From assembly GCA_024704765.1 (NCBI GenBank), contig JAKMXF010000221.1, forward strand, positions 372,001 through 436,000: a stretch of DNA of 64,000 bases, given 5' to 3'. Source of the DNA: Oopsacas minuta. Lineage: Eukaryota > Animalia > Porifera. This document shows positions 5,160-19,657 of the stretch, in pieces (position 1 is the stretch's first letter; each line of letters begins with the position of its first letter). The notes under the pieces are model-generated. The model was not told the origin of the DNA. It made no database searches and saw only the letters and a program-made list of their open reading frames with translations. Both the position numbers and the translations under genes were made by a program.

Positions 5160-8100
5160 ATGCATACTCTACTGAGAAGACCTGTTAATCTAAAACGTCT
5201 AGCCAGGAGCTTTTCTGGCGTTACAATCCCTCCCAGATACAAGAACGAACCTATCAGCAGTTTCTTGCCCGGGACTGAAGAGAGAGCTCTCCTCAAACAG
5301 GAACTGGAGGACCTGAAGACAGCGGGGCCAGTTGAAATCCCACTTGTGATCGGAGGAGAAGAGATACACACTGAGAATAAAGCTCAACAACTCTGTCCTT
5401 ATCAGCACGATAGGATTATCTCTGAAGTTAGCCTAGCAGATGAGAACCACATTGATAAAGCAATAAAAGTAGCTCTGCACAAGAGGAAGGAATGGGAACT
5501 AACTCCTTTCGATCGTAGAGCTGCTGTATTTCTAAAAGCAGCTGATCTGCTAGCCGGGAAGTACAGGAATAAAGTACTGGCTGCTACCATGATAGGACAA
5601 GGAAAGGTGAAATTATAATCACAACATATTATACTCGTTACTATGTATATACTAATGTTATTATTACAATAGACAGCATTTCAAGCAGAGATCGATGCGA
5701 CATGTGAACTGATCGACTTCTTCCGATTCGGAGTACAGTACGCTCAAGAAATATACTCCAACCAGCCGGAGCTACACTCCCCGGGGGTATGGAATAGACT
5801 GATGTATAGAGGATTAGAGGGATTCATTGCAGCTATTAGTCCATTCAATTTTACTGCTATAGGAGGGAATCTTGGGGGAACTCCTGCTATAATGGGTAAT
5901 GTAATACTATGGAAGCCTTCACAACAAGCTATGTTATCAAATTGGGTTGTATTCCAGACACTAAGGGAAGCAGGGATACCTGATGGAGTTATGAACTTTC
6001 TACCCAGCACTGTACCTCTATTCGGTGATATAGTTCTAGCTAGTCCTCACCTAGCCGGACTAAACTTCACTGGAAGCTCAAATACACTGAGAACTCTCTG
6101 GAAACAAGTGAGTAATAATTGTATCATGCTAGCGTCGCTTACGAATAAATCAGGAAAATATGAAATGAAATAATTTCTAGTTCGTACTCTCAACAATGAG
6201 ACAAATCAACTAATCTACAATATGTAGCAAAACTCAAATAACTTCCTAATGAAGCTATAATCTAACCTAATATTAATTTCTAATATGTAATTAAATGGAA
6301 TTTCCCAATCTTTTCACTGTTGAGATGTTCCTGCTGTATTTCTCCTTGAATTCCCACGAACACTCTCCCTTTCACGAAATTGATATTCTCTATCTTCTCT
6401 CCCATCTTTGAGCTCAATTCTTGTAGCAAATCTATTCTTGAGGTATAAGCCTCTACAACTAGCGTACATCTTCCCATTGATACGTTACAATCTATCCCAT
6501 CAATGTTGGTAATGATATCTGTAGCATGACAGGGTACTCCGGTGAGAGTTATGTCTCTAGCTGCTAGAGATATCTTATCACTGCTCTGCTCACAAGATGT
6601 GATAGTAAGTGCGATTTTATTTTCCTTAGCTCTACACTCTGCATTAACCATGTTTACATCCTTAATTCCCCGCGCCATCAGAATCCCGAATAACACGCTA
6701 GACACCAAAAGAGATTTGTATTTATTCGCTGTTTCTCCTTCCAATTTCATTTCCAATGCCTTATCCTTGCTAATCGAAGCGAGTACAACTCCCAGCTTCT
6801 TAGCTAGTGACACATAAGGCACGAGGTGTTTAGAGCTAGCGTGGACTAAGGAGGGAGCATTCACCACCCCAACTAAAGGCCTTCCTTTCACGACATCAAC
6901 AAACTGCTCTGCTATTTCTCTAGCAACTCTCTTCTGTGCTTCTTTAGTACTAGCCCCTAAATGTGGTGTAGCTATTACATTTTCATGTTTGAATAAAGCT
7001 TCGTTCTTTGGTGGTTCTACATCATACACGTCTAGTGCTGCTCCTGACACATGTCCACTGACCAGTCCCCTGTAAAGAGCATCCTCATCTATAATTCCAC
7101 CACGTGCACAATTCAGGATTTTTATTCCAGGCTTACACTTACTGATGTTTTCTTCATTGATCAGATTACGAGTCTCAGGCAGTAGAGGGGTGTGTAAAGT
7201 CATGTAGTCAGCTGTAGCTAGCATCTCATCCCACGACAATACCTCTACTCCGAATTTAGCTGCAGCTTCTGCTGGGATAATCGGGTCATATCCAATCGTT
7301 CTCATCCCGAAAGACTGCATCCTTATAGCTACCTCTCGTCCTATCTTGCCTAGCCCTACTATAAATAGGGTCTTCCCCATCAACTCAGTACCCATGAATA
7401 GTTTCCGGTCCCATCTTCCAGCCTTCATAGAAGCATCCGCTTTAGGTATACTCCTTGCCATGCAGCCCATCATGAAGCAGGTCAGCTCTACAGCACTGAT
7501 CGTGTTACCACCGGGAGTATTCATTACGATTATTCCTTGATTCGTGGCTGCGTCCAGATCAATGTTATCTACTCCTGTACCGGCCCTGCCAATTATACGC
7601 AGTATACAACCTGGAGTATTAATGACGTCAGCAGTTACCTTTGTAGCAGAGCGTACAATTAGACCGTCATACTCAGTGACGGCTTTCTTGAGTTCTTCTT
7701 TGCTCAGTCCAGTCTTAACGTCAACTTTAATACCATTCTCTTCTAGTATTGACTTGCAGCTGGGGTCAGCTTGATCACTGATAAGCACGCGAGTAAGTTT
7801 AAGATCCATTCTGTAGCTACTAATATATATGTCTGTGTATTATAAACTTGTTTTTATACATTTGTAACGGTACAGCATGATATTACTGTGAGGATGATAT
7901 TTGCATTCATTTCCACCTCTACTAATGCATAATTCATGATAATGACCTCTTAAGGTCAAATTATGAATTGATTAGTCTATAATACAATGATTTGAGATAG
8001 CATGAGTTAAGCTATTCATGATTATAATGCTGCTGTAATTATAGGTTGGAGAGAATATCAATCGCTACAATACGTATCCACGTATCGTAGGGGAGGCAGG

Positions 8101-8851
8101 AGGTAAGAACTATCACTTAGCACACGAAAGTGCAGATGGAGACAGCTTAGTGAATGGGACTGTACGCTCTGCATTCGAGTACAGCGGACAGAAATGTTCC
8201 GCATGTTCTAGACTCTATGTACCACGTCCTCTCTGGGAGAACGAAGTGAGAGACAAACTAATCGAGAGGACTCAGAGCCTGGCACTGAGTTCTCCAGAGG
8301 ACTTTACAACCTTCCTAACAGCTGTTATAGACGAGAAAGCATTTGATCGAATCAAGTCTTACATAGACTTAGCTAAACAGAGTCCTGATACAGAGATACT
8401 GACAGGGGGAGGATGTGACAAGACCAAGGGGTATTTCGTAGAACCCACCATAATCCTTACTACTAATCCAAATCATAAGCTAATGCGTGAAGAGATATTC
8501 GGTCCTGTGTTGACTGTATTCGTATATGAACCTCAATACTGGGAGGGAGTATTAACATTGGTGGATGAGAGCACTACCTATTCGTTGACAGGATCTTTGT
8601 TTGCTAGAGACACTGGTGTTATAGCAAATGCAACTGAGAAACTGAGAAATTCCGCAGGAAACTATTATATCAACGACAAAAGCACTGGTAGTGTAGTGGG
8701 ACAACAACCATTCGGAGGGACTAGATCCTCTGGTACAAACGACAAATCTGGCTCCATAGCCTATCTCTTGAAATGGACCTCATGGATGTCTATCAAGGAA
8801 AACTTTATCCCACTCGATAAGTACAACTACCCGTATATGAGTGAGAAATAA
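5160..8851 (+). CDS. ALDH4A1: Delta-1-pyrroline-5-carboxylate dehydrogenase, mitochondrial; exons 5160-5606, 5673-6107, 8045-8851
   Basis: GQGK|TAFQAEIDA, SPFNFTAIGGNL, NFTGSS, LWKQ|VGENINRY..GEAGGKN, catalytic SAFEYSGQKCSACS, EEIFGP, GTNDKSGS. Both introns are GT-AG phase 0. N-terminus is presequence-like. Confidence 0.97.
6280..7809 (-). CDS. PHGDH: D-3-phosphoglycerate dehydrogenase, intronless, nested antisense in ALDH4A1 intron 6108-8044
   Basis: LIVRSATKVT, GRAGTGVDNID, NTPGGNTISAVE, VGLGKIG Rossmann motif, NCARGGII, TPHLGAST..AQ. Confidence 0.97.
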   Translation of the reverse strand: MDLKLTRVLISDQADPSCKSILEENGIKVDVKTGLSKEELKKAVTEYDGLIVRSATKVTADVINTPGCILRIIGRAGTGVDNIDLDAATNQGIIVMNTPGGNTISAVELTCFMMGCMARSIPKADASMKAGRWDRKLFMGTELMGKTLFIVGLGKIGREVAIRMQSFGMRTIGYDPIIPAEAAAKFGVEVLSWDEMLATADYMTLHTPLLPETRNLINEENISKCKPGIKILNCARGGIIDEDALYRGLVSGHVSGAALDVYDVEPPKNEALFKHENVIATPHLGASTKEAQKRVAREIAEQFVDVVKGRPLVGVVNAPSLVHASSKHLVPYVSLAKKLGVVLASISKDKALEMKLEGETANKYKSLLVSSVLFGILMARGIKDVNMVNAECRAKENKIALTITSCEQSSDKISLAARDITLTGVPCHATDIITNIDGIDCNVSMGRCTLVVEAYTSRIDLLQELSSKMGEKIENINFVKGRVFVGIQGEIQQEHLNSEKIGKFHLITY

Positions 8852-13384: not shown

Positions 13385-13534
13385 TCAGACAAATATCTGC
13401 TATAGTAAATGACATTGTATTTTGTTAAGAAGAAGTTTATCTTATTTCAAAATGATTCCATTAACCAAAGAACACAGCCAAAATATGATACTAAAAATAA
13501 GATACACTATTAATATTCCTTAAAAATTCTATAA

Positions 13535-14893
13535 TTATTGAGTCTCATCCTTCCGTTCAGCAGGAGTAGGTTCAGCACTAGGGGGTATCTCTTCAGGGGT
13601 AGCCTTGTCAGGAGGGGGTATCTCTTCAGGGGTAGCCTTGTCAAGAGGAGGTGTCTCTTCAGGTGTAGCCTTGTCAGGAGGGGGTATCTCTTCAGGGGTA
13701 GCCTTGTCAGGAGGGGGTGTCTCTTCAGGGGGTGTCTCTTCAGGGGTAGCCTTGTCAAGAGGAGGTGTCTCTTCAGGTGTAGCCTTGTCAGGAGGGGGTA
13801 TCTCTTCAGGGGTAGCCTTGTCAGGAGGAGGTGCCTCTTCAGGGGTAGCCTTGTCAGGATGGGGTGCTTCTACCGGAGCAGGATTAACTACACCTGTTCC
13901 AGAGAGGAGAGGAGTAGCCCCTTTTTGAGTAGGAATAAATCTCTGTAGAATCTCCTGAAGCTGTCTCATCAACATATCCTCTTCTTCAATGGTAGAGTGA
14001 GTACCAGTAGATAGGTGTTCGGGTATTACTACTCTGTCCTGGAAAAATCTTCCGCTGGGGAACTCTCTGATCCTTGGAGTAACACACAGCCAGTGAGCCG
14101 TGTCAGCTCCCTGTTGTGGAGTACGCAGTTTGTTACGCATCCACCAATGAAATGTAGGCAAACCTTTTTGCACTATAGTAGTATCAGCCCAGCCCGGATG
14201 CATTGTACTGAAATGAATGGATTCGTACATTTGTGACCAGTAACGCATGATAACAAGTTGCTGCCGTTTGTTCTGTGCATACACGAACACACTATCGAAC
14301 TTCCCTTTGGTTGAGTTAAGATCATTGGGTATCATCTTCATAGTGTACATTCCAGCAGAGCATACGGTAACTACTCTAGGGTCTATTGATCTCTCCAGAA
14401 TAGGAACAAATAATGTGGTCATTATATAGACTGCTAGCGTGTTCGTTGCAAAGTTAATTTCGAAATTTTCATCAGTCATAGTTCGTGTGTTCACGCAACA
14501 ACCAGCATTATTAACTAACACATCAAGAGGGGTACCAGTCCCAATGAACTCGGAGCAGAAGCGTAGCACATCCCTGGTTCTAGACAGGTCACACACGTAC
14601 AGGAATACATTCTCATTTCCGGTTTCCTTCTTAATCTTTTCCCTAGCATCTACACCTCTCTGCTCGTTACGACACACCATATGTACTGTACCACCAGATC
14701 TAGCTATGTTTAGAGCTACACAGTATCCGATACCACTGTTTGAACCTGTTATCATATAGCCTCTCCCTGTCAAGTCTCCTCCAAGGTCTCCTTCTATGAA
14801 AGCACGACTCGCTTTCTCGTAACCTCCCCTAGTATACTCCTTTGTACCCTTATGAAACCAAGAAGCGTTTCTGAAAAATGACTGTGACATCAC
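13535..14893 (-). CDS. DHRS12: Short-chain dehydrogenase/reductase DHRS12-like with a Pro/Glu-rich repeat tail
   Basis: TGSNSGIG, NNAG, YAQNK catalytic YxxxK, MHPGWADT, LRTPQQGADT; about 130 aa C-terminal extension. Confidence 0.92.
   Translation of the reverse strand: MMSQSFFRNASWFHKGTKEYTRGGYEKASRAFIEGDLGGDLTGRGYMITGSNSGIGYCVALNIARSGGTVHMVCRNEQRGVDAREKIKKETGNENVFLYVCDLSRTRDVLRFCSEFIGTGTPLDVLVNNAGCCVNTRTMTDENFEINFATNTLAVYIMTTLFVPILERSIDPRVVTVCSAGMYTMKMIPNDLNSTKGKFDSVFVYAQNKRQQLVIMRYWSQMYESIHFSTMHPGWADTTIVQKGLPTFHWWMRNKLRTPQQGADTAHWLCVTPRIREFPSGRFFQDRVVIPEHLSTGTHSTIEEEDMLMRQLQEILQRFIPTQKGATPLLSGTGVVNPAPVEAPHPDKATPEEAPPPDKATPEEIPPPDKATPEETPPLDKATPEETPPEETPPPDKATPEEIPPPDKATPEETPPLDKATPEEIPPPDKATPEEIPPSAEPTPAERKDETQ
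13578..13870 (-). repeat. Coding minisatellite, 33-bp unit (about 8 copies plus a 15-bp partial), encoding DKATPEE[A/I/T]PP[P/L/S]
   Basis: Unit GGAGGGGGTATCTCTTCAGGGGTAGCCTTGTCA with variants is directly visible in the sequence. Confidence 0.95.
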
Positions 14894-15003
14894 TACAATA
14901 TATATGTTAATATTATTAACACCTATCAGTTGATAAACCCATACAAATCATAAAAATATAGACATCTGATACAACCACTAAAAACACCTATAACGTTATA
15001 ACA

Positions 15004-17383
15004 CTAAGAGAATATCTTAATTCTGTCAGTGATACAAGCTCTACATAACGGACATACATACAGCTCCTTAGCACACGTCTCACATATCTGATGATGTCTA
15101 CAGGGCATCAATACAATAGCCTTCTCTTCAGTAGCACATACGATACACAGTCTCTGGTCATCTAGTACTCTCATTTCTTCTTGAAGAAGATTTGTGAGTT
15201 CTTTAACTCGTACCTCACTAACTGAGGATACAGGACCCTCTCTATTGCAGATTAGCTCGTAGAGAGCATTACTCCTCTCCGCGAGCATTTTTCTCAATCG
15301 TAATATCTTCTGTTTTTCAACCTCCTCGCCCCTAGCGTGACTAGCCCTGACTTCCTCAAGATTAGATCGTAGCTCATCAATTAGGTCTTGTTTGTGTGAT
15401 AGGTCACTCCGTGTATCAATCAATTCATCTTTCAGCTTACTTAACTCCTTGCTAGCTGCTGTATCCGCTTCTCTCATCTTGTCATCATAGGACTGTATAA
15501 GGGCAGCTTGTTTGTTAAAGAAGTTATCCTCTCCATCCTGTAGCTTCTGCTCCAGTATAGTAACCTCGTGCTGTAGACTCTGATACTGAGTAAGCATTGT
15601 CCCTTCTCTCTGTACCATCTGATTCTTCAAATACTCTAAACTCTCACTCAGAGCTTGTATTCGTTCTTCCTTCTCCTTTGTAAGGAGGGTGTCTGGCAGT
15701 ATGTGTATGCTCTGACAGAAAGGAGGGACCGTATGACAAACTTGAGACATGAGATCTCCCAGAATAGAAGCGTACCCGAAAGTTACGCCAGAAACCATCA
15801 TTTGATTGGTAGGGAAACTCACTATAGAGACAAATTTAACAACAGAGCTTATAGAGTAATTAAACTAACTTACTAGCATCCTGCTTGAGTGTAAAGAAAA
15901 TAGAATTAGCTAGGAATCCGTGAGGAAAGAAGGGATGAGCTGTAGCACTATTTACACAGAACTTAGAACAAATAGTATCACGGTTAAGCATCCATAATGG
16001 TATCTGTATGAACTTCTCTACTGTTATATGTATCTTATCAACTCTTTGTAAAGTAATAATCACACACCCGATGGAAATACTGGGATATACTGTTCTCACA
16101 ATTTGTACGGCATGTCTGAGAATATTCATCTCATCTTCTGATAAGCTGTCAACAGAGACTATATCATCAAATAGCTTCATACCCGGGTTAATATTTGTCT
16201 TAAGGTACTGTTCACGGGATAGGAACATACCAGACCGCATCAGGAGATCTACCAACATGTTATTACACACTATTATATTCTGTCCTATTTCCGTCTTTAT
16301 GTCAGAGAGAGAACTTCCTGATGAACTGAGGGGGTATGCTTCCTCCCCGTACCGCTTAAAGAACTCCATAGCTAGAGATTTAGCCGTCTGTCTATTGTCA
16401 AAATAAAACCCTGCATGTCTTGTGTCACAACTATTGTCTCCCTTCTCCACTAATAGTCCCAAATACACGGGAATCAATTCCGGACGTGACTCCAGGGCTC
16501 TTGCCCACATAGCGGACAAAGTGTGATCCAGTTCTGACTGTTGTAGCACAGATCTCCTGTCTCTGTCTAGTCTAAGTATATGCAAATTAACGCCAGCTAG
16601 CATTCCTCCAGCTGCCTTAGACATGTCTGACACCCAAATCTGTCTAACATACAATTGCCCTGAGAACCTGGGAGCTAGCAATAACCAACCAGATTCACTC
16701 TTAACAAAATCTTCCTGAAGTAATGTTTCTAAGAATAGGAATCTCTGAGAGAACTTCCTCCACTCGCTCAGTAGGATGGGATACAAGGTCAGACAAGTAT
16801 CAGTAGGGGACAATTGGAGAGTAGAGGTGTCAACATCTACCTCTCCTTCTGCATTCCTCTTACTAACTTGTATAGTAAGTACCTGCTCTTCAAATACAGG
16901 GTCACGTTCCATACAGAAGCCCCATTTATCACTTTGTGTCTGCATAACTAGTTGTCTCCCCTCGCGAACCAACGCCAGAGCTCCTACCTTAAGTCCCTCC
17001 CCAAACTGACCGATAACTTCTTTTCTTTCTGACTTAGCAGAGTATCCAAGTAGCAGAACCTTACGAGCTAACTCTGTATAACTGTTGATAAGATGAATAG
17101 AGTTATTCAGTTTATCTACTTCTATTCTACCCAATTGTATTTCCTCCGTCTCCCCGTAGTAGCGAGCATAAGCACTGTATACCTCAAGGACCTGAGATTC
17201 ATTTCGAGAGAGTAACGGACCTTCTAACGATTTGTTTTGTGGTACAGAATTGGATATGTGATCTATTGTAGAAAGGAGACCGTCATACCAATTCTGTACT
17301 ATCTCTCTAAGTCCTTCCCATATCTTCCAAGACTTAGCATAATCTTGCGTGAGAGAGAGACGGATGGTATGCTCACTCATCAA
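15004..17383 (-). CDS. GHKL (HATPase_c-like) ATPase + coiled coil + C-terminal RING finger, 775 aa; exons 17383-15874 and 15821-15004
   Basis: N-box GLREIVQNWYDG, LLLGYSAK lid, G2 box GQFGEGLKVG, LYV..LDRDR region. A 52-bp intron (GTAAGT...CTCTATAG, phase 1) joins the two listed ORFs in frame. RING: CIVC..LMPCRH..CETC..CPLCR. Confidence 0.8.
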
Positions 17384-17642
17384 TCTACATATAGAGGAGT
17401 TTGACTGTTAGGAAGTTGTATTCGCATGAATTCCCCTTGCTAATTCGCAAAGATAGAGAATAATGACATTACGTACAGTATTCATCCCCGACACATAGAT
17501 ACGTATTGAATGTGAAACTTTAATAATTCAAATTCCATTTGTAAGAAACTAAAGCTAAAATTAAGATAATAGTAAGTGTTGCATAAAGTAGAAACGATGC
17601 TCGGCTAGAAATTAAGGAATTACACTAACTACGTATTTGTAA

Positions 17643-18407
17643 TTATATACTAGTTCTCTGCCATGGATAGGTGATGGGTGCGTCACTACCCTTTTTGATC
17701 CACATTGGTTTAGATGCGTTTGTTGTTACATTTTCACACATAATTTGCTCTGCATTTTCACTTCTCCATTTGTTAACAAAATCTTCATTATACAATACTT
17801 TAGCTATTCCAAGTTCTCTACAACAGGAAGTGAGAGCTTCTCTCTTAGCAAATTCAAAAGCATAAACTAATCCACTCTTATAACCACTCGGAGTATACCA
17901 AGGACCATCTCCAATAGCCATCATCATGAATCTCCCCGAGATATACAAACCGAATTCTCGACTAACAATTCTTGAACCATCAGGGTTTTGTATGAATGAA
18001 GGCTCAGAGATTGGAATAATATTCCAACCGCCTATGCCAAATGTTTTGTTAAGCAAGTCTGGATAGTAGCTAGATGGTACATATAAACTTCCATCCACCC
18101 GCTTAATTCTAATATCAACAGGTTCAGGGGGAGTATGGAGTAAGGAAACTATCTTATCACTCAGAGGTTCCTTACAAATACCAATAAACGGGTCATTGGG
18201 CGTAGGTGTAGCTTGATAATATTTCCTCAAATCTTCAAGTGAAGAATCATTCGGCCTTCTACTACGAGGGGGTGACCAGTTTGAAAAATTTTCTCCTTCA
18301 GAGACCGCTTGATTGGAAGGATCATAATAGTTTCTGTGTCTTGTAGCGGCCGTAGCTTGTAAGCGAGGGGATGCTATTAGCAATTTTCTTATGGTACTAC
18401 ACAACAT
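17643..18407 (-). CDS. MGM101: Mgm101-like mitochondrial genome maintenance protein (Rad52-family single-strand annealing protein), intronless
   Basis: DIRIKRVDGSLYVP..LLNKTFGIGGW, VSREFGL, KREALTSCCRELGIAKVLYNEDFVNKWR, ENVTT..K.MW.KK...YPW parallel yeast Mgm101 motifs. N-terminus is basic and free of acidic residues, like a presequence. Confidence 0.85.
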   Translation of the reverse strand: MLCSTIRKLLIASPRLQATAATRHRNYYDPSNQAVSEGENFSNWSPPRSRRPNDSSLEDLRKYYQATPTPNDPFIGICKEPLSDKIVSLLHTPPEPVDIRIKRVDGSLYVPSSYYPDLLNKTFGIGGWNIIPISEPSFIQNPDGSRIVSREFGLYISGRFMMMAIGDGPWYTPSGYKSGLVYAFEFAKREALTSCCRELGIAKVLYNEDFVNKWRSENAEQIMCENVTTNASKPMWIKKGSDAPITYPWQRTSI

Positions 18408-19657
18408 GTTAAGTGATACGACAGTGCTACTATTATATCTAGTATATGATTGATAAATGATGTTAACTTAATATCTCAATAAATACAGGGAGGGTTAAAG
18501 AAATAACCTCCACGGTAAAGCTACAATTCTAAATCCCAAACACAAACATTCCAGCAACATCAAAGTTAAAGATCATAAAGTGATCAATACCATGCGCAAA
18601 GCATTGAAATGTAATTGAAAGTATTTCCGTAATACATCCACCAATTAGTTAAGAACTCATTTATTATTCAAAAGAAATTATTTCCTAAGCAAATCTGCAG
18701 AAATAAACAGAATAAGTGGTTTGTCAATAATGAGTATTTGAGTAATAAATAAAAGGTAATAGGAATAGAGAAATTGATTACTTTAAATATGCCCGAATTT
18801 GCCGAATACTCTTGTTGACAGCTTGTCAATGAATATAACATAATACATTCAAGTTAAACAAGTTATCAAAATGGAATTGTTAATCCCTAAAGTTTTATGG
18901 AGAAGTAAATTATATTTATGAATTTTGATACTTAAGGATCTGAGAACTGCATTCTATGTAGCAGATAGAAATTAGGGAACTACGGGAGCTAATATCTCCT
19001 CGAAATTAAGGAACTATCCTCAAAAAGTCAATAAAACATTTTCGTGAGAGATGTAAGATGCGATTTAATACAAATCCACCACCAGTTGTGGTGTACTAGT
19101 AATTATTAAATAGGAGAGCGTATTTGCTAATTAATTCCTTTATTCTAGTGGAATATTATGAACAGAAATGGTCATATCCTAAGATGATGTTAATATATTT
19201 ACAGCTGTATTAGAAAAAGGCTACGTTATCTGTCATTGAGAATGAATTGATTAAATCATAAATCCCAATATTACAACCATAATTATGAATAGAAAGTAAA
19301 CTGAAAAATAAATTCAAACAAAGAGATTAAATTCTAACGATAAAGATGATTAATTAGAGAATTGTTAAGTGGACAAATTCTAGATAAATTGGTAGAGATT
19401 ATAGCAAACAGAGTTTAAATAGCTCAGGTCAGATATGAGATTCTTCGAAGAAATGGAAAATAAATGACTTCAGTTTGAAAGAACTGGTATAGCTGGAAGC
19501 TATACTATTCTATCAATCAGAAATTCTCAAAATATTGCACGAGCTTAAATATAATAATGTTAGGTGTAGAATTACTTTGAAGGCAAATTTATAATGTTAA
19601 AGAGTATAAATAGATAGTTGAATCGAAGAATATAGAATAACTAGTCTCCTAGCTAAA

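Follow-up and report, generated by a model that had tools for sequence, protein, structure and literature searches.

What is a GHKL module of phage type doing in front of a RING finger in the genome of a sponge? The question is raised by a window of 64,000 nucleotides (nt) from the glass sponge Oopsacas minuta (contig JAKMXF010000221.1, positions 372,001 to 436,000 of the forward strand; all positions given here are counted within this window). Two open reading frames (ORFs) lie on its minus strand at 15860-17383 and 15004-15822, at the positions given by an earlier interpretation made from the letters alone (the sequence-only reading). These two ORFs are one expressed, single-copy gene with two coding exons. 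The product, of 774 residues, is probably a RING E3 ubiquitin ligase from an uncharacterised eukaryotic family. In this protein an Hsp90/sacsin-like GHKL domain is followed by a transducer-like domain with an LDRDR motif, a helical domain, a dead zincin-like domain, a linker with a coiled coil and an IAP-type RING, and the whole would work as a nucleotide-gated dimer. It is a new architectural variant of the GHKL-effector proteins.

GHKL proteins with swappable effectors (MORC, sacsin, Tiamat/NO VEIN) are emerging as immune or quality-control machines common to prokaryotes and eukaryotes. To these the gene appears to add a compact family whose sensor half is common to thousands of phage proteins and whose effector is a predicted ubiquitin ligase. 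Public annotation already lists the gene, but misnamed; its family is uncharacterised.

One gene from two reading frames

The coding region (15004-17380) runs from an ATG at 17380 to a stop at 15004-15006 and comprises 774 codons in two exons, all on the minus strand. Coding exon 1 (15874-17380) specifies residues 1-502 and the first base of codon 503, while coding exon 2 (15004-15821) supplies the last two bases of that codon, 271 further codons and the stop. The intron between them (15822-15873) is 52 nt long, starts with GTAAGT, ends with TAG and lies in phase 1. Its removal joins A to TG, which gives a Met codon, and the frame continues. The translation of the first ORF is 100% identical over its full length to a 774-residue Oopsacas minuta protein at NCBI (P0001), which consists of 502 + 1 + 271 residues and therefore has the same exon join as the window. 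P0001 carries the name "Chain B, Baculoviral IAP repeat-containing protein 7" (BIRC7).

Evidence for splicing came from four public sequencing runs (X1, X3, X4 and X5) placed on 13500-18500, of which X1, X3 and X4 are from the same sample. X1 and X3 resemble genomic DNA: their depth is flat, the intron is kept, and one of them holds Nextera adaptor remnants. X4 resembles RNA-seq, with TruSeq adaptor remnants and a depth that is very uneven between genes (about 550 over the GHKL-RING gene vs 15,000-40,000 over Mgm101 next to it). Contigs from this run tile 14973-17362 only and none of them covers the intron; one, of 326 nt, links 15821 to 15874, skipping exactly 52 nt with ends CT..AC on the plus strand. 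The Oopsacas genome project data include Illumina RNA-seq, paired-end DNA, Nextera mate-pair and PacBio data (PMC10280926). That X4 is RNA was deduced from the features of the run and is not on record, a point that counts against the expression evidence. The run X5, which bears another organism label, contains the locus at about 97% identity, intron included. In a second hexactinellid assembly (L006, 70% protein identity) the same two ORFs were found about 50 nt apart.

The sequence-only reading had joined the two ORFs into one gene through a 52-bp phase-1 intron at 15873-15822. The ends, length and phase of the intron proved to be as claimed, the X4 contig spans exactly the predicted 15874/15821 join, and identity to P0001 agrees with a single gene. 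The motifs it had quoted are also present: REIVQNWYDG at residues 25-34, LLLGYSAK at 109-116, GQFGEGLK at 124-131, LYV...LDRDR at 243-275, and a C3HC4 RING. The opposite view, that a 507-residue GHKL protein and a RING protein started from an internal codon are encoded by separate genes, could appeal to prokaryote-style gene callers, which list the ORFs apart in several assemblies. It is contradicted by the RNA-like junction contig, which links the ORFs in frame, by full-length relatives of about 780 residues in many taxa, and by exon 2, which has no in-frame ATG near its 5' end. The two-gene reading was rejected as scarcely credible.

A GHKL fold with an asparagine at motif II

Exons 1 and 2 were searched separately, and the sole full-length form used was the public protein. 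An AlphaFold2 model of exon 1, made from a 105-sequence alignment, reached a mean pLDDT (predicted local distance difference test) of 91.7. When it was compared with the PDB by Foldseek, chains of the Hsp90 family came first (TRAP1, 1.5e-8), followed by MORC2 (5.5e-6), all with probability 1.00. VIA gave Z values of 10.7-14.4 overall. The N-terminal and middle domains of TRAP1 aligned at Z 14.3 over 260 residues (root-mean-square deviation 5.1, model residues 7-341), and topoisomerase VI-B, phage and yeast topoisomerase II, MORC2/3 and ParE/GyrB at Z of about 11. On these models, the N-terminal part of exon 1 is a GHKL (Bergerat) fold with a transducer-like domain behind it. The GHKL domain occupies 16736-17380 (about residues 1-215), as judged from the AlphaFold2 model, Foldseek, VIA and the family profile. 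The beta-rich domain that follows (16541-16735, about residues 216-280) resembles a transducer or middle domain and includes the invariant LDRDR (16556-16570).

The structural alignments to TRAP1, topoisomerase VI-B, GyrB and MORC extend through residues 216-280, past the GHKL domain, and at the level of fold they uphold the "S5-like region" of the sequence-only reading. A closer likeness to the Hsp90 middle domain was also considered, in which "LYVRQIWV ... LDRDR" would correspond to "LYVRRVFI ... NLSRE" of Hsp90 with its catalytic Arg. This candidate found no support in sequence: a profile of residues 200-300 searched against the PDB retrieved no Hsp90 middle domain and only chance matches, and the resemblance is confined to the overall structural alignment.

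The nucleotide pocket was followed through a census of 212 sequences, 40 of them eukaryotic and 172 phage-type. In the family profile E26-x3-N30-x2-D33 falls on the N-box, K116 on the lid lysine and G124/G127/G129 on GxxGxG. Motif I, or N-box (REIVQNWYDG with E26, N30 and D33, 17279-17308), aligns to ELISNASDA of HtpG. Its Glu is found in 169/172 phage and 37/40 eukaryotic forms, and its Asn and Asp are each found in 172/172 and 39/40, the remainder being gaps. The segment LLLGYSAK ... GQFGEGLK (16988-17056), which carries the lid Lys K116 and the motif III glycines G124, G127 and G129, is invariant or nearly so and aligns to IGQYGNGLKSG of MORC2. Across the 212 sequences E26, N30, D33, K116, the three motif III glycines and D272-R273-D274-R275 are almost invariant, and the pocket is clearly under strong constraint.

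Between motifs I and II lies an insert of about 55 residues (17105-17278), a beta-meander with model strands at 52-61, 65-74 and 80-89. It is found in eukaryotic forms only, all phage-type rows of alignment A1 having gaps there. The motif II equivalent, LINSYTEL (17069-17092), has N99 at the place of the adenine-binding Asp and has lost the glycines. N99 aligns to the D of "DNGVGM" in HtpG and of "DDGAGM" in MORC2, a correspondence taken from weak profile matches and the fold with no superposed structure.

Several observations weigh against a conventional nucleotide-gated ATPase. Exon 1 matched no Pfam family at E up to 0.1, HATPase_c and HSP90 included, and the family profile aligns to HtpG (E 0.053) and MORC2 (0.25) across motifs I-III as a weak sequence link. 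Asn stands at position 99 in 40/40 eukaryotic and 157/172 phage sequences, Ser or Thr in the others, and Asp in none of the 212. The glycine at position 101 is present in 155/172 phage vs 8/40 eukaryotic forms; the window protein reads NSYTEL, with no glycine, and lacks the DxGxG of GHKL motif II. Hsp90 no longer binds ATP when the corresponding Asp is changed to Asn. With Asn at motif II, the window protein may bind or hydrolyse ATP differently or not at all. Further searches added no named relative: a phmmer search of exon 1 against the PDB returned a chance match only, and the window protein gave nothing meaningful against NCBIfam and PADLOC. The label "GHKL ATPase" from the sequence-only reading therefore stands in part. 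The fold and motifs I and III are borne out, but "ATPase" is not established, because the motif II Asn is family-wide and the glycines are mostly gone in animals.

The same residues underlie the main rival explanation, namely that the GHKL-like module is a pseudo-ATPase. It would then be a static scaffold for a client or ligand, or a binder of something other than ATP, in an adaptor-type RING E3 without a nucleotide cycle. Asn99 stands where every canonical GHKL ATPase has an adenine-contacting Asp, G101 survives in so few eukaryotic forms (8/40), an insert of 55 residues separates motifs I and II, and the HATPase_c and HSP90 Pfam models are not matched. Set against these are the catalytic-base Glu E26, the Mg-binding Asn N30, D33, K116, GxxGxG and LDRDR, which are near-universal in phage and eukaryotic members, as well as the exclusively synonymous differences from a close relative in residues 145-280 (5/5). 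Without a catalytic or ligand-binding pocket this degree of conservation would be difficult to account for, and an Asn could in principle still hydrogen-bond adenine. A pseudo-ATPase was judged unlikely, and a nucleotide-gated module remains the preferred interpretation.

The differences just mentioned come from the X5 contig, against which 36 coding differences were listed, a partial list with small numbers: 19 are synonymous and 17 non-synonymous. Besides the 5/5 synonymous differences of residues 145-280, there are 11 non-synonymous and 9 synonymous ones in residues 288-476, and 6 and 4, respectively, in residues 1-62 of exon 2 (the linker and the first coiled-coil residues). The intron differs at 4 of 52 nt. 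By these counts the GHKL core seems to be tightly conserved and the rear half to evolve faster. The amino-acid changes gather in the rear of exon 1 (15875-16540) and the linker and none falls in the GHKL core, a distribution that would be expected of a variable recognition surface, at 36 sites only.

Among known systems, the Hsp90 family (TRAP1, HtpG, Hsp90, GRP94) is the best structural match for the N-terminal and middle parts, and motif I (ExxxNxxD) and motif III (GxxGxG) align with HtpG. Unlike Hsp90, the window protein matches neither the HSP90 nor the HATPase_c model of Pfam, has Asn for the motif II Asp, shows no middle-domain sequence match, and has a pseudo-zincin, a coiled coil and a RING in place of the C-terminal dimerisation domain. 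MORC proteins likewise combine GHKL, transducer and coiled coil, and MORC2 aligns across motifs I-III with Z 11.1. However, the window protein has no CW or other chromatin-reader domain, lacks the motif II Asp and ends in a RING effector, and the match is weaker than that to Hsp90.

A proposed shift from phage protease to RING effector

The second half of exon 1 (residues 281-502) folded well when modelled alone (pLDDT 89.5). Its first part is a helical domain (16163-16540, about residues 281-406, from the models) for which no specific PDB match was found, only generic helical ones at Z <5.5. The part behind it (15875-16162, about residues 407-502) looks like a degenerate zincin fold that lacks HExxH. 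In an exhaustive VIA search of this part the top three matches were zincins: 3e11 (Z 6.0), deuterolysin 1g12 (5.7) and HtpX 3cqb (5.5). Further matches were mostly zincins as well, among them aminopeptidase N, LTA4 hydrolase, selecase, Ste24, abylysin and ACE2. An Atlas shape search with residues 281-502 returned phage GHKL clusters and M56/M48 peptidases.

Two results speak against this assignment: Foldseek gave no match for the C-terminal half alone (residues 281-502) at E up to 0.001, and zincin Z values of 5.5-6.0 are weak and would not stand alone. They combine, however, with what is seen in the phage relatives. Phage-type proteins end in a conserved HExxH segment, where the aligned eukaryotic forms have unrelated residues; HExxH is found in the aligned region of 158/172 phage-type vs 0/40 eukaryotic forms, and it is absent from the window protein. 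Phage C-terminal fragments also gave weak but consistent Pfam matches to SprT-like (0.01-0.07), M48 (0.12) and DUF6782. Because the weak zincin scores coincide with HExxH in the aligned phage region, a degenerate zincin fold is the best reading of residues 407-502 on present models. The "helical domain" of the sequence-only reading is thus correct for its helical part, but its end appears to be this decayed zincin-like fold, whose phage counterparts keep HExxH.

The phage relationship itself extends over the first 450 residues or so, whose homologues, by profile and alignment, form a very large phage family, phrog_6077. The phrog_6077 profile matched at 2.5e-30 over residues 88-381, and alignments A1 and A2 gave 23-30% identity to phage forms over about 440 residues. 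A profile search of 1.84 billion representatives retrieved 6220 clusters (50% identity) at E <=1e-3, 1855 of them at <=1e-30; the best 150 of the 6220 clusters are mostly 430-460 residues long. With a 438-residue metagenomic member, tblastn detected the family in 108 phage genomes, including Vibrio, Pseudomonas, Pectobacterium, Escherichia, Erwinia and Moorella phages, where the genes are annotated variously as "hypothetical", "histidine kinase-like ATPase", "RIIA lysis inhibitor" or "chaperon". Among the predicted viral structures of BFVD, phage proteins matched at 1e-22 to 1e-17, with rIIA next at 1e-6 to 1e-4. These results support the sequence-only claim of a microbial or phage-type module distinct from the standard animal GHKL families (phrog_6077 at 2.5e-30; phage structures at 1e-22 vs Hsp90 at 1e-8).

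The phrog_6077 proteins share with the window protein a homology of about 440 residues and the same invariant residues, Asn99 and LDRDR included. They differ from it in being 360-460 residues long, in lacking the 55-residue insert, the coiled coil and the RING, and in keeping HExxH (158/172). T4 rIIA-type proteins also have a phage GHKL N-terminal domain followed by a variable C-terminal part (PMC7824862), but they are much more distant than phrog_6077, belong to another PHROG, are 650-1000 residues long and have neither HExxH nor RING.

Forms of about 440 residues were found on phage-like contigs among small early and DNA-metabolism genes (L001-L004). Three of these four distinct phage loci (L001 2743-3648, L002 6775-8148, L003 5781-6629; not L004) have a DNA ligase gene no more than about 1.5 kb away. 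This proximity may reflect a replication module or a functional link. SprT/Wss1-like proteases act on DNA-protein crosslinks.

Exon 2 opens with a variable linker (15670-15821, exon 2 residues 1-50) that aligns poorly between animals. The coiled-coil-like region behind it (15175-15669, exon 2 residues 51-215) is marked by its heptad contrast and by weak Pfam coiled-coil matches. By a crude measure the contrast was 0.41, above all 200 shuffles (mean 0.25, maximum 0.38), and the region contains one Pro and 35% charged residues. The last 50 residues (15007-15156) form an IAP-type C3HC4 RING with its pre-RING helix and C-terminal tail. The RING was identified as PF13920 (3.8e-11, 43.1 bits vs a cut-off of 27), and in the PDB it aligned at 5e-11 to 5e-9 with cIAP2 (4.7e-11), cIAP1, XIAP, BIRC7 (4auq_B) and MYLIP. 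The alignment with cIAP2 and cIAP1 takes in the pre-RING helix, all eight metal ligands, "CPLCR" and the C-terminal tail with its aromatic residue. Both the coiled coil and the C3HC4 RING had been proposed in the sequence-only reading. From these residues the RING would be expected to bind an E2 and to transfer ubiquitin. The NCBI name "Chain B, BIRC7" is a misnomer that arose because the RING matches BIRC7. IAP-type RING E3s (cIAP1/2, XIAP, BIRC7, MYLIP) resemble the window protein in the RING, the preceding helix and the C-terminal tail, but the similarity is limited to the last 60 or so residues and the window protein has no BIR, CARD or UBA.

A join of GHKL and RING has a precedent in plants. 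Arabidopsis AT5G23110 has three sacsin repeats and a PF13920 RING, though it is several thousand residues long and its relation to the window protein is limited to the type of domain. A plant sacsin-like protein ending in a PF13920 RING is noted in the preprints on Tiamat, NO VEIN (NOV) and sacsin (10.64898/2026.09.30.754977; 10.64898/2026.09.30.755639). These proteins are described there as a GHKL ATPase combined with helical repeats, a Wss1-like metalloprotease fold that is inactive, and effectors that can be swapped; neither preprint mentions the present family, and "RING" is absent from the Tiamat text (10.64898/2026.09.30.754977; 10.64898/2026.09.30.755639).

Sacsin, Tiamat (TmtA) and NO VEIN share the design of the window protein: GHKL, a helical region, a metalloprotease-like fold without HExxH and a swappable C-terminal effector. 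The window protein, however, is shorter by a factor of about 5-6, neither TPR-like repeats nor Fold B could be identified in it, its effector is a RING where theirs are nuclease, HEPN or J domains, its family has Asn at motif II, and its closest kin are phage proteins with an intact HExxH. One rival reading makes it a shortened and diverged sacsin/Tiamat/NOV protein with a RING effector, and not a separate GHKL lineage. Phage relatives gave sub-threshold matches to NCBIfam P_loop_sacsin (2.6e-7, 31 bits vs a cut-off of 50) and to PADLOC TmtA (1e-6), Tiamat too has a metalloprotease-like fold after the ATPase and swaps its effectors, and AT5G23110 ends in a PF13920 RING. Yet these matches span only about 65 residues around motifs I-II, the window protein itself has no sacsin or TmtA match, TPR-like repeats and "Fold B" were not identified in it, and Tiamat keeps the canonical ATPase residues according to its preprint while the present family has Asn at motif II. 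Membership of that lineage is conceivable but rather doubtful, and a separate GHKL-RING family with phage kin is favoured here.

Descent, proposed action and surroundings

RING-ended forms of 749-961 residues were found in several sponges (Oopsacas, a second hexactinellid, Oscarella, Corticium, Dysidea) and in other animals (the coral Oculina, scallops, abalones, an ark clam and a hemichordate), with PF13920 at the end of every long form tested. Outside animals they were found in the stramenopile Platysulcus tardus and as intron-less genes on two protist-like contigs. Among the named matches of the protein search there were none from vertebrates or ecdysozoans. On one of the protist-like contigs (L010, 9497-13818) a PRP8 gene with an intein (Hom_end_hint) stands beside the intron-less GHKL-RING gene. 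The best named matches of this PRP8 are 63-68% identical across kingdoms, and this comparison shows the contig to come from a non-animal eukaryote.

In scallop the gene is divided into about 17 exons over 37 kb and in Corticium into about 15, both on chromosome-scale scaffolds, and some eight to ten of their boundaries lie within a few residues of each other (tblastn boundaries, approximate). The Oopsacas intron, at residue 503, is off the scallop and Corticium boundaries and cannot be called ancestral. Corticium candelabrum has a second, tandem GHKL-RING copy directly downstream (L008 18038-19446), with 69% identity in the first exon.

A maximum-likelihood tree of 75 rows and 437 columns was built without an outgroup, since rIIA, sacsin and Hsp90 resemble the family in the GHKL part alone, and too weakly to root it reliably. 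All eukaryotic forms fell on one side of a single branch (bootstrap 100, SH-like approximate likelihood ratio test 99), and the animal-like rows formed one group (90/83) nested among non-animal eukaryotes, the protist sequences branching off at the base of the RING-bearing clade. The tree is unrooted and the direction of transfer is thus unproven, which tells against any firm account of origin. Because phage-type diversity is far greater and the eukaryotic stem is single and long, the data fit one ancient capture by an early eukaryote, possibly followed by vertical descent in animals with losses. RING forms in non-animal eukaryotes and the one intron-rich animal clade imply that any transfer predates animals.

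A phage or bacterial contaminant, or a recent transfer specific to the sponge or to animals, might be suspected as the source of the ATPase part, with phage proteins being the closest outside the family by sequence, profile and shape. The gene, however, has a spliced intron and animal-gene neighbours in an order kept in the second hexactinellid, orthologues with 15-17 exons stand on chromosome-scale scaffolds in scallop and Corticium, and the single eukaryotic clade includes non-animals and is only 23-30% identical to phage. Contamination and a recent or animal-specific transfer were rejected as most improbable. The horizontally acquired ATPase of the sequence-only reading accordingly keeps its phage affinity but loses an animal-specific acquisition. 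As for an orthologue of a characterised, vertically inherited family, which had also been allowed for, no characterised orthologue was found, while the animal forms do make one intron-rich clade. Nor was the protein recognised there as a named animal gene, and this agrees with a public name that is a RING-derived misnomer: no description of the family was found in literature on GHKL with RING, SprT or phage, or on MPN635, a coverage that is incomplete.

GHKL N-terminal domains dimerise on nucleotide binding, and coiled coils and IAP-type RINGs dimerise too. Because all three elements dimerise, the protein would be a constitutive dimer. In the mechanism we infer, the transducer-like, helical and pseudo-zincin parts would hold a client, and the N-terminal gate would shut around it when nucleotide binds. 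E2~ubiquitin, recruited by the RING dimer, would then be used to mark this client or the ligase. In the phage relatives a live protease may take the role of the RING. The eukaryotic lineage would have lost the protease motif and gained the coiled coil and RING, so that a phage-ancestor logic of "bind, then cut" would have become "bind, then ubiquitinate". The splicing, the folds, the homology, the motif counts and the tree pattern are results, whereas dimerisation, nucleotide gating, E3 activity, the client and a role in defence or quality control are all proposals of this model. Proposals, too, are the ubiquitination of clamped targets and the innate-defence role put forward in the sequence-only reading.

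A broader account was also considered, which is speculative and is put forward with little confidence. The protein might be an innate-immune or proteostasis sensor that stems from a phage or prophage weapon, a "GHKL clamp + zincin protease" captured by an early eukaryote. The protease would have decayed to a client-binding pseudo-enzyme and the effector would have changed to a dimeric RING. The gene would have been kept in marine invertebrates and some protists and is apparently lacking in vertebrates and ecdysozoans, and the motif II Asn would stand for a distinct nucleotide chemistry.

The family offers a small, tractable system, with about 440 residues in phages and about 775 in animals, and a gene that is nearly intron-free in glass sponges. 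It raises the questions of how a GHKL clamp is coupled to protein destruction, which ligand the Asn pocket takes and what the common phage version does in infection. The analysis also corrects the misleading public name "Chain B, BIRC7" and makes any transfer ancient, not a recent animal acquisition.

At its 5' end the gene has an untranslated region (17381-17441, minus strand) that appears in X4 as a loose end, in which an AG acceptor (17441/17440) is joined to a leader of at least 23 nt. The acceptor lies about 60 nt upstream of the ATG, and a trans-spliced leader or a distant 5' exon is possible. The 23-nt leader was not found within the 64-kb window at up to 2 mismatches, and for this reason the two cannot be told apart. 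A trans-spliced leader has been reported in the glass sponge Aphrocallistes (PMC10282587).

Mgm101, the GHKL-RING gene and an SDR gene follow one another on the same strand (13538-18407, minus), with gaps of only about 260 and 113 nt. Together with the leader, this close spacing raises the possibility of operon-like co-transcription of the three. The neighbours in the second hexactinellid (L006) are as in Oopsacas, with Mgm101 upstream and SDR downstream, and the synteny Mgm101-gene-SDR is kept. An extra gene for an ART-like protein (ADP-ribosyltransferase, weak Pfam match) lies there between the RING exon and SDR (6953-8359) and is absent from the Oopsacas window. The upstream gene (17646-18407, minus) encodes a homologue, in an animal, of Mgm101 (mitochondrial genome maintenance; Pfam Mgm101p, 9.1e-37), and its contig depth in the RNA-like run X4 is far above that of its neighbours. 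The end of the SDR ORF (13538-13800, minus) consists of about nine tandem copies of a Pro-rich "PDKATPEE"-like unit. The SDR repeat is probably hard to assemble, since DNA contigs of two runs break off at 13599-13799.

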